This document shows positions 39,080-40,117 of a stretch of DNA of 64,000 nt, piece after piece; position 1 is the stretch's first letter; the number at the start of each line of letters is the position of its first letter. The stretch is from IMG/VR virus record IMGVR_UViG_3300028676_000005, positions 62,001 through 126,000 of that record. One strand, 5' to 3'. Position numbers and translations under genes: made by a program. Under the pieces are notes generated by a model. It had not been told where the DNA came from. It was given only the letters and a program-made list of their open reading frames with translations, and ran no database searches.

Positions 39080-40117
39080 TTAACGTCCTGAATGAGAGTT
39101 GCCTGTGTAAAACAACATACGTTCTTGGTCTTGATGACCGATAGTCCCTACGTTGACATGAGGGAAACGATCTTTGAAGGCTGGGCGATAGTTGGAACGA
39201 GACATCCCCATTTCCCACATAGCTTTTTCAACCCACTCCTTGCGCTTATGGTTACGCGGTACCGGGTCTTTCAGATAACCCTCTTTATCCCGAGGTTGTT
39301 TCAGGTCATCTCTGTAAATTTCTGTAATACTGTCGTAATAATCGTAAACACCAAACTCACCACCAAAAGCTTGGTAATCTGGAAACCTTTTCCAGTCCTT
39401 AACAACAAACCCGGCAACCCACAACTCATGTCCCCATACTTGTGCATAAGGACTTTCCTTGGTGTGATCTACAATCCGAGTACTTGTTTCATAAAGATAA
39501 GGGTTGGTTAAGAATCTTGGTTTATTTGTAAAATGCGTGGTAAATGGTTTTTGTTTCTCGTAACCTCCTGACCCATCCAGTTTTTGTTTGTAGTGGTTCA
39601 TAGTAAAAATTGGTGGCATTTCTTTAGCAAATGGGCTTTGTTTTATATGTAACTTTAAATGCCCGTATTGTTTCTGAATGGTCGCTTCTAAATCAAAAGC
39701 AGTCTCTTCGTAACTAATACGACCAACCCTTAACTCAGGTGCTACGAATGCATTATGACTAATAAACTCACCACGACGGAACCCACCGCCTGGCATCATC
39801 AGCCCACGGGCAGGCAAACCGCCAAAGTAGCCCAAAGAACCAATAGCTGTCATTGCTGGACCGCGCACAGCAGGATCTTTACGACGAATAGCATAAACCC
39901 GTTCCAGATGTTCTTTGAACTGTTGGTCGTTCAGATCAGGGCGGATCAAAGCATCCAAACGCGCCAGTGTTTCAGGATCGCTTTCGTAAGGGTGGAATGG
40001 TAACATTGACTTATCGGCAGAACGGGATTCTTTATCGACCAAATCGTCAGCCAACTGGGACAACCCTTCTTCGTAACCTTTATAATCAAATGGTGTGCTA
40101 TCGTCATCGCGTTTCAT
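39080..40117 (-). CDS. Mosaic hypothetical protein with an EF-Tu-like C-terminal peptide
   Basis: 345 aa, AGGAG SD; contains [10 protein letters not shown] and GGFRRGE. Confidence 0.8.
   Translation of the reverse strand: [345 protein letters not shown]

Follow-up and report, generated by a model that had tools for sequence, protein, structure and literature searches.

What use does a bacteriophage have for the opening residues of a bacterial translation factor? The question is raised by a 64,000-nucleotide stretch of DNA, hereafter the window, which comprises bases 62,001-126,000 of the 229,429-bp virus record IMGVR_UViG_3300028676_000005 (G+C content 46%). Near its C-terminus, a minus-strand protein of 345 amino acids (aa) carries a peptide that reads like the N-terminus of elongation factor Tu (EF-Tu), the most abundant bacterial protein. 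A sequence-only reading of the window had described this as an EF-Tu peptide grafted onto a phage protein and had suggested molecular mimicry, a decoy or a captured fragment of a tuf gene. Comparisons with EF-Tu and with related phage proteins identify the peptide as a captured, domesticated copy of the 5' end of a bacterial tuf (EF-Tu residues ~3-27), specific to EF-Tu rather than to translational GTPases in general.

Capture of the 5' end of tuf

The peptide occupies residues 314-331 of the open reading frame (ORF), which coincide exactly with positions 39125-39178 of the window. Its counterpart, EF-Tu residues 6-23, runs from the N-terminal arm through the β1 strand to the middle of the P-loop. 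When the N-terminus of Escherichia coli TufB is taken from the genome record and laid alongside, ten consecutive residues are identical (39134-39163, minus strand), just as the sequence-only reading had noticed, and an F and a D are also in register. The six-frame ORFs of 60 aa or more in the 229-kb phage total 176,160 aa, and in these only 3e-5 shared 10-mers with EF-Tu are expected by chance; the longest other word common to this ORF set and EF-Tu has 6 residues.

Searches of the PDB lead to the same protein. With the last 49 aa as the query, phmmer returns 58 matches, all of them EF-Tu N-termini (best expectation value, E, 0.007). A profile of the tail (A5; 30 columns, built from 22 members of the protein family described below) has EF-Tu as all of its top 59 sequences, with E from 4e-11 to 4e-6 and chain residues 3-27 in register; the first match outside EF-Tu is aIF2-gamma, at E 0.008. 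NCBIfam EF-Tu models also match relatives of the window protein, at profile positions 3-36. Of the explanations first offered, a captured tuf fragment is thus borne out. The likeness to the EF-Tu G1 region (PF00009 GTP_EFTU; TIGR00485) extends over 25 columns and includes F6, P11 and the β1 strand NVGTIGH, followed by x-D. The differences are equally plain: the phage protein holds only ~6% of EF-Tu, without domains II and III, and the peptide sits at the C-terminus of an otherwise unrelated phage protein.

The strength of selection on the peptide was estimated from seven coding sequences. Since the orthologues had been identified by full-length homology, the motif introduces no bias into this estimate. 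The ratio of nonsynonymous to synonymous differences per site (pN/pS) is 0.12 for the EF-Tu-like codons 314-330 and 0.14 for the module that precedes them (276-313), as compared to 0.26 for the last 15 codons (331-345), 0.36 for the middle region (166-275) and 0.40 for the N-terminal extension (1-165). Because pS is alike over all five regions (0.5-0.7), it is the amino-acid sequence that has been conserved, not the DNA. By this measure, constraint on the amino-acid sequence is shown to be greatest in the peptide and the preceding module. The sequence-only reading had regarded amino-acid conservation with synonymous divergence as the mark of selection, and this is the pattern seen in the orthologues; it had also looked to conservation among relatives, 22 of 27 of which keep the core.

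The same data bear on the possibility that the peptide is a product of chance, an assembly chimera or a decaying scrap of host DNA. Host gene fragments do occur in phage genomes, and some short viral ORFs that encode the EF-Tu heptapeptide look like chance or out-of-frame matches (among the matches listed in the IMG/VR scan described below, 17 of 66 short ORFs lack the following Asp/Glu). For the window locus, this explanation is refuted by the selection, the profile match and the chance expectation, and we give it next to no likelihood: purifying selection is strongest exactly at the peptide, and both the 3e-5 expected 10-mers and the profile E of 4e-11 speak against chance. An assembly chimera in particular is ruled out by seven independent orthologous contigs from other samples, in which the junction is identical and many synonymous differences have accumulated.

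Over the 10-codon core, 23 of 30 nucleotides match E. coli tufB, but only 3 of 10 third positions do; tufB serves here as a proxy for the tuf gene of the true host. Because the codons are not tuf-like, the capture is judged to be old and selected. The fusion is ancient, family-wide and domesticated, and the word 'grafted', understood as a recent event, has to be given up. Two routes of capture were considered and rejected. Co-capture with the tRNA genes that precede tufB would leave a tRNA gene beside the G1-peptide ORF, and none is found there in 23 of 24 loci scanned; one 13.8-kb locus (L075) has two tRNA genes, neither adjoining the ORF. An attachment-site duplicate, considered for temperate phages, does not fit Haemophilus phage Aaphi23, whose ORF lies in the nin region between ninB and ninG rather than at an attachment site.

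A peptide without a G domain

The window protein belongs to a family of 27 members, the whole yield of two word-index searches and an exhaustive HMMER search across 1.8 billion representatives. All come from uncultured jumbo-phage contigs, and no source has a name for them; where the contigs are long, they are of jumbo-phage size, up to ~242 kb. Pfam, PHROGs, NCBIfam and PADLOC contain no family for the window protein, and neither the locus nor the protein has a match in 50,697 cultured-phage records (megablast, tblastn). Eight members have the long form seen in the window protein; the others are short forms of 156-235 aa that align to residues ~166-345. The motif N[VI]GT[IV]GH.D is kept in 22 of the 27, with V, G, T, G, H and D invariant among those 22. 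The other five lack the peptide: four diverge directly after a conserved RFPH, and one is truncated. Several relatives resemble EF-Tu more closely than the window protein does, for example P0008 (GHKDHGR), P0018 (NVNVGTVGHIDHGK, with the loop GHIDHGK) and P0012 (GHIDFGKS). Given these fuller loops, the family ancestor probably held the complete β1 strand and P-loop.

Two oddities deserve mention. Where the long form would lie, a 236-kb relative has two overlapping ORFs (L001:4677-6639) of 444 and 212 aa; the 444-aa product is similar to residues 21-81 of the window protein, and the 212-aa product (P0009) comprises the C-terminal module and the peptide. The pair could reflect a split, a fusion or a frameshift between long and short forms. 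The only EF-Tu-derived sequences reached by the full-length family profile in the 1.8-billion-protein library, P0022 and P0023, are fragments of EF-Tu in which the N-terminal ~45-75 residues occur twice in tandem, and are probably assembly artefacts of tufA/tufB.

That the P-loop GKT is missing and the protein is no GTPase had been anticipated in the sequence-only reading, and the wider comparison agrees. The window peptide reads GHQDQER, with QER in place of the Walker GK[ST]. The elements G2 (RGITI), G3 (DxxG) and G4 (NKxD) are absent, and no family member contains D.PGH or NK.D. Pfam has no match to the full protein, the tail alone reaching at best E 0.27 (in a relative), and PF00009 has no match anywhere in the 229-kb phage at E up to 10. 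Since the Walker GK[ST], G2-G4, a PF00009 match and a phage G domain are all lacking, the window protein, judged by its motifs, cannot act as a GTPase. A split GTPase was also considered; a very divergent partner aside, it is rejected, as the phage has no G-domain remnant without G1 that PF00009 could find. When five other phages with the peptide were searched with PF00009, four yielded only the G1 peptides themselves (profile positions 1-34), and Burkholderia phage FLC9 gave no match. A zincin metallopeptidase, weakly suggested by ESM Atlas features (scores 0.78-0.84, below the 0.9 line), was discarded because no family member contains HExxH.

A minimal β-strand-P-loop element might nonetheless, singly or in oligomers, bind a phospho-ligand such as GTP or GDP. 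There are reports of phospho-ligand binding by isolated β-(P-loop)-α peptides, more of the loop is kept in P0012, P0018 and P0008, and several ORFs among the IMG/VR matches listed retain GKT and the start of helix α1. The window clade, however, has no Gly-Lys, and the full GxxxxGK[ST] is present in the motif of just one of the 22 motif-bearing relatives (P0012). Invariance extends over the strand and the first half of the loop and does not include the phosphate-binding half, and the phage has neither G2-G4 motifs nor a partner G domain. We regard phospho-ligand binding as very improbable.

The peptide is also found in cultured phages, where it can be located by tblastn using first the tail and then the first 44 aa of TufB as the query. 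The carriers (Table 1) mostly share nothing else with one another, although several Vibrio and FLC9 proteins share the phrog_27465 N-terminal model. PHROGs assigns these ORFs to phrog_27465 (Aaphi23 ORF27 type) and phrog_12626 (Huxley gp203 type), both of unknown function; the window protein and its relatives P0009 and P0017 match neither these nor any other PHROGs. As in the window family, the ORFs of both groups have the host peptide and no G domain, and most of them are among small genes of unknown or accessory function. They differ in that the remaining sequence is unrelated to the window family and the peptide is N-terminal or internal. Another difference is the strongly basic C-terminal tail (9-13 K/R in the last 25 aa) in seven of the nine cultured-phage carriers, which the window family lacks. 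Three Vibrio phage proteins have the tail NP[FY]..KH..RQ.N.R in common, and the composition of the tails hints at RNA or ribosome binding.

The cultured protein most like ours in layout is gp192 of Pseudomonas phage PaBG, in which a phage-specific N-terminal part is followed by NVGTVGHIDHGK near the C-terminus; this 12-mer is identical in short-form relatives of the window protein. In addition to its basic C-terminal tail, gp192 differs in that hhalign aligns only 13 motif columns with the window family, and so the PaBG fusion may be either independent or the result of module shuffling.

Two further observations concern individual carriers. In Erwinia phage Huxley, gp203 lies directly downstream of an acetyltransferase, gp202 (L015:2383-3267). 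Vibrio phage henriette, in addition to its 59-aa ORF with the EF-Tu peptide, has a second weak G1-like match to PF00009 (E 0.002, profile positions 3-27) at 16829-16903 of NC_021073.1, inside an ORF of 594 aa. PMC9079301 gives RimI as the enzyme that acetylates the N-terminus of E. coli EF-Tu; the adjacency of gp202 and gp203 and this acetylation may be a coincidence.

Uncultured viruses extend the pattern. A scan of IMG/VR for the codons of NVGTIGH, in which ORFs were called mechanically, gave at least 103 matches. Among the matches listed are 29 full-length EF-Tu-like genes, 8 ORFs cut by the end of the locus and 66 short ORFs, 49 of which also have the following x-D/E. With the motif masked, these 49 listed ORFs fall into at least 25 clusters with unrelated flanks, the motif being N-terminal in 10, internal in 11 and C-terminal in 4. 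Six other viral ORF clusters also show low pN/pS at the motif, but they were chosen for exact NVGTIGH and are therefore biased; we have not counted them. That the peptide recurs in dozens of phage ORFs without other kinship, including several from phages that can be cultivated, suggests that it has some general use, as yet unexplained. A search of the openly accessible literature (subscription journals were outside it) turned up no description of phage proteins carrying an EF-Tu N-terminal peptide, so that phage ORFs with the EF-Tu G1 peptide apparently form a wider, undescribed class.

One way to account for this recurrence is that NVGT[IV]GH.D is a mobile mini-module, repeatedly captured by or shuffled onto unrelated phage proteins, that would plug into nascent or nicked EF-Tu by strand complementation or into some other part of the translation apparatus. 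We consider this somewhat unlikely as it stands. If true, it would define a kind of linear motif not described before, one by which phages mimic the host in takeover or counter-defense, with the jumbo-phage family of the window as its C-terminal variant.

Possible uses of the strand

For a sequence that derives from EF-Tu, is under selection, lacks the nucleotide-binding residues and recurs, we infer a role in binding: the peptide may imitate the EF-Tu G1 element as an exposed linear segment, offering a strand for interaction rather than any enzymatic activity. This is a tentative reading, with a good chance of being right but short of probable. The part kept throughout comprises the β1 strand and the front half of the P-loop (N-V-G-T-I/V-G-H-x-D), but not GK[ST]. 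In native EF-Tu, β1 is buried in the middle of the G-domain sheet. Partners of folded EF-Tu such as EF-Ts, tRNA and the ribosome could therefore read at most the H-x-D, and whatever reads the strand must either see EF-Tu in a non-native, nascent or nicked state or accept the phage strand instead of EF-Tu's own.

Three versions would most simply explain why the phage peptide is constrained to stay identical to a buried strand of EF-Tu. In version (a), the phage strand would take the place of β1 in the G domain of nascent or nicked EF-Tu, and by this strand complementation host EF-Tu would be tethered or disabled during host takeover. In version (b), the phage strand would pair with the identical strand of unfolded EF-Tu, and in version (c) it would be read by a factor that handles non-native EF-Tu. 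We tentatively favor version (a) as the most concrete of the three. Replacement of β1 is thinkable: in PDB chains 5i4r_C and 2hcj_A, a separate polypeptide made up of the N-terminal 37-45 residues of EF-Tu takes its place within the fold. A close alternative is that the peptide would act as a decoy toward a factor recognizing this segment of EF-Tu. Mimicry generally is expected to leave signs of purifying selection and convergent acquisition, and both are found: pN/pS is 0.12 versus 0.36-0.40, and there are at least 25 flank-unrelated clusters as well as the cultured phages. Mimicry or a decoy, as first suggested from the window, remains plausible.

A complex prediction for the C-terminal module with E. 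coli EF-Tu scored 0.01, a 'no answer' that is evidence neither way. Several points weigh against an interaction strand. EF-Tu has its own β1 in cis, and displacement in trans would be unfavorable unless the protein were nascent or nicked. Five of the 27 relatives have lost the peptide and keep the preceding module; hence, the core job of the protein is not strictly peptide-dependent. The exposure of the peptide is weakly grounded as well, since both structure models described next are of low confidence.

AlphaFold2 models reach a predicted local distance difference test score (pLDDT) of 51 for the full protein and 60 for the C-terminal half with 27 aligned sequences, too poor for fold assignment. 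The N-terminal extension is mostly below 60, and a helix, EWVEKAMWE (294-302), has moderate confidence in both models (pLDDT ~77). Residues 322/324-345 have no secondary structure and pLDDT <50 in both, and the tail is not packed on the protein; the models are thus weakly consistent with an exposed peptide. Foldseek comparison of the models with BFVD and the PDB gave nothing with E <0.1.

Alternatively, the captured strand may by now be an ordinary structural or assembly element of the phage protein, unrelated to host EF-Tu. It could form a β-hairpin with the MLFYTG that follows it, act as a strand for self-association, or bind a phage partner such as a syntenic neighbor. The gene lies in a conserved syntenic block, one member of which is structural in Yersinia phage phiR1-37, the peptide is dispensable in five of the 27 relatives, and a segment [IM]L[FA]Y[TV]G stands beside the motif both here and in two unrelated IMG/VR groups. 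On the other hand, a generic β-strand would be free to depart from EF-Tu at N, V, G, T, G, H and D, in proteins whose remaining sequence is only ~30% identical. Repeated acquisition by unrelated ORFs at N-terminal, internal and C-terminal positions would be unexpected, and in the AlphaFold2 models the strand is left unpacked against the protein. Taken together, we find a purely structural role unlikely.

The hydrophobic segment is an observation in its own right. It adjoins the EF-Tu strand in three ORF families with otherwise unrelated flanks: L108/L109 (ILFYVGKPYFNVGTIGH), L043/L106 (RMLAYTGR...NVGTIGH) and the window clade (39083-39124). It precedes the strand in the first two and follows it in the third, and it may be a partner strand.

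Should the favored reading hold, that is, capture or poisoning of EF-Tu by strand complementation, it would amount to a new means by which viruses attack a hub protein of the host, and several PHROG families now listed as 'unknown' or mislabelled 'elongation factor Tu' could then be named.

Genomic setting and known systems

The source phage of the window, whose DNA occurs in peat metagenome runs, is of the phiKZ/EL-like jumbo type. One of its virion proteins shows 52% identity to the counterparts in Pseudomonas phage EL and Erwinia phages Joad and RisingSun, and phage GroEL, tail fiber and helicase genes are present in the window. Synteny around the target gene is kept among orthologues, with a 197-aa gene upstream and a phrog_10766 gene downstream (Table 1); g082, the phiR1-37 homologue of the latter, is annotated as a structural protein. 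Compensatory changes preserve the stem of the upstream hairpin across the six orthologous loci. It is terminator-like and could be a terminator, a processing site or a regulatory element that opens a new expression unit. Within the C-terminal module of the protein, P285 and W295 are invariant.

Table 1. Features of the window protein and its locus, and cultured-phage proteins that carry the EF-Tu peptide
Feature	Length or residues	Position	Strand	Remarks
ORF of the window protein	345 aa + stop	39080..40117	-	27-protein family; uncultured EL-like jumbo-phage contigs only
N-terminal extension	residues 1-165	39623..40117	-	only in the eight long forms; predicted mostly helical/disordered
Middle β-rich region	residues 166-275	39293..39622	-	common to long and short forms
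Conserved C-terminal module	residues 276-313	39179..39292	-	contains DKEGY; most conserved block of the family
EF-Tu-derived peptide	residues 314-331	39125..39178	-	= EF-Tu residues 6-23
Clade-specific tail	residues 332-345	39083..39124	-	in place of EF-Tu GKTTLTAA; pLDDT <50
AGGAG ribosome-binding site		40125..40129	-	7 nucleotides upstream of ATG; invariant among orthologues
GC-rich hairpin, then T-run		40137..40164	-	between upstream and target genes; kept in 6 orthologous loci
Upstream syntenic neighbor	197 aa	40176..40769	-	no known family; orthologous loci
Small downstream ORF	63 aa	38883..39074	-	start 5 nucleotides past target stop codon; 4/6 orthologous loci
Downstream syntenic neighbor		38339..38938	-	phrog_10766; homologue g082 of Yersinia phage phiR1-37
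Haemophilus phage Aaphi23 ORF27	59 aa	nin region		EF-Tu peptide, no G domain
Vibrio phages henriette and 2.058.O	59 aa			EF-Tu peptide, no G domain
Vibrio phage 1.244.A	133 aa			EF-Tu peptide, no G domain
Vibrio phage Va2	195 aa	L022:1489-2076		EF-Tu peptide, no G domain; basic tail
Vibrio phage 150E35-1	239 aa	L018:2007-2726		EF-Tu peptide, no G domain; basic tail
Burkholderia jumbo phage FLC9 gp386	107 aa			EF-Tu peptide, no G domain
Erwinia phages Huxley/Machina group gp203	110 aa			annotated 'putative elongation factor Tu'
Pseudomonas jumbo phage PaBG gp192	267 aa			peptide near C-terminus
Listed carrier with basic tail, locus L016		L016:1992-2171
Listed carrier with basic tail, locus L017		L017:2013-2336
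Listed carrier with basic tail, locus L019		L019:1501-1680
Listed carrier with basic tail, locus L020		L020:1501-1902
Listed carrier with basic tail, locus L023		L023:973-1776

Further upstream, two genes from the target, lies an MqsA-antitoxin-like helix-turn-helix protein of 84 aa (40791-41045, minus strand; Pfam E 7.5e-8). It is kept in four of the five orthologous loci that have the upstream flank, and no toxin partner was noticed. A 14-bp inverted repeat (41058-41090) with a terminator-like score on the plus strand separates it from the preceding minus-strand gene. Beyond are a homologue of phage EL gp149 (41837-43081) and the phage GroEL (45189-46817, minus strand; phrog_5725, E 4e-112), which is syntenic with EL gp146. 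Among cultured phages the closest relative is EL, in which the GroEL-gp149 block is syntenic; a homologue of the target gene was not found in EL, and hhalign of EL gp150 and gp151 against the protein family was negative.

How does the peptide compare with known cases in which EF-Tu stands between phage and host? In T4 Gol/Lit, type IV Thoeris and Avs7, as perhaps here, EF-Tu is at the phage-host interface. Lit cleaves EF-Tu at G59-I60, the caspase-like protease of type IV Thoeris cleaves it at R45/R59, and Avs7 uses it as a structural cofactor through an interface in domains II/III. Gol, a segment of the capsid, binds EF-Tu but is not itself derived from it; phage and EF-Tu also meet in the Qβ replicase. 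These precedents suggest that the peptide might be a decoy substrate or competitive inhibitor for a host defense enzyme that attacks EF-Tu, and the fragments in Vibrio phages Va2 and 150E35-1 do keep the switch-I segment RGIT[IV], where EF-Tu is cut. Lit, Thoeris and Avs7 nevertheless involve EF-Tu residues 45-60 or domains II/III, and the window peptide corresponds to residues 3-27. The links to Lit and Doc drawn in the sequence-only reading are not supported: a Lit or Thoeris decoy at the window locus is rejected because the cleavage sites are outside the copied segment, as is the Doc site, T382. In addition, β1 is buried in native EF-Tu and could not be read by an enzyme that recognizes the native protein, PADLOC defense and anti-defense models do not match the protein, and there is no defense gene nearby. 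A defense decoy is thus a distinctly unlikely explanation of the window peptide. The Va2 and 150E35-1 fragments, in which G3 and G4 are absent, are a separate matter; they could be protease decoys or decaying phage copies of tuf.

A plant parallel had also been proposed, through the elf18 epitope and its receptor EFR. The likeness is a sequence overlap with EF-Tu residues 6-18. However, elf18 is the acetylated extreme N-terminus of EF-Tu, sensed outside the cell by Brassicaceae, whereas the window segment is internal to the protein of a peat phage and nothing links it to plants; the resemblance is only a coincidence of sequence.

The known cases use EF-Tu residues 45-60 or domains II/III. Here, what has been copied is the buried β1 strand with half of the P-loop. 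As far as comparison of sequences can tell, the window locus would be a variant of host-protein mimicry, one that points to a wider class testable in cultivable phages.

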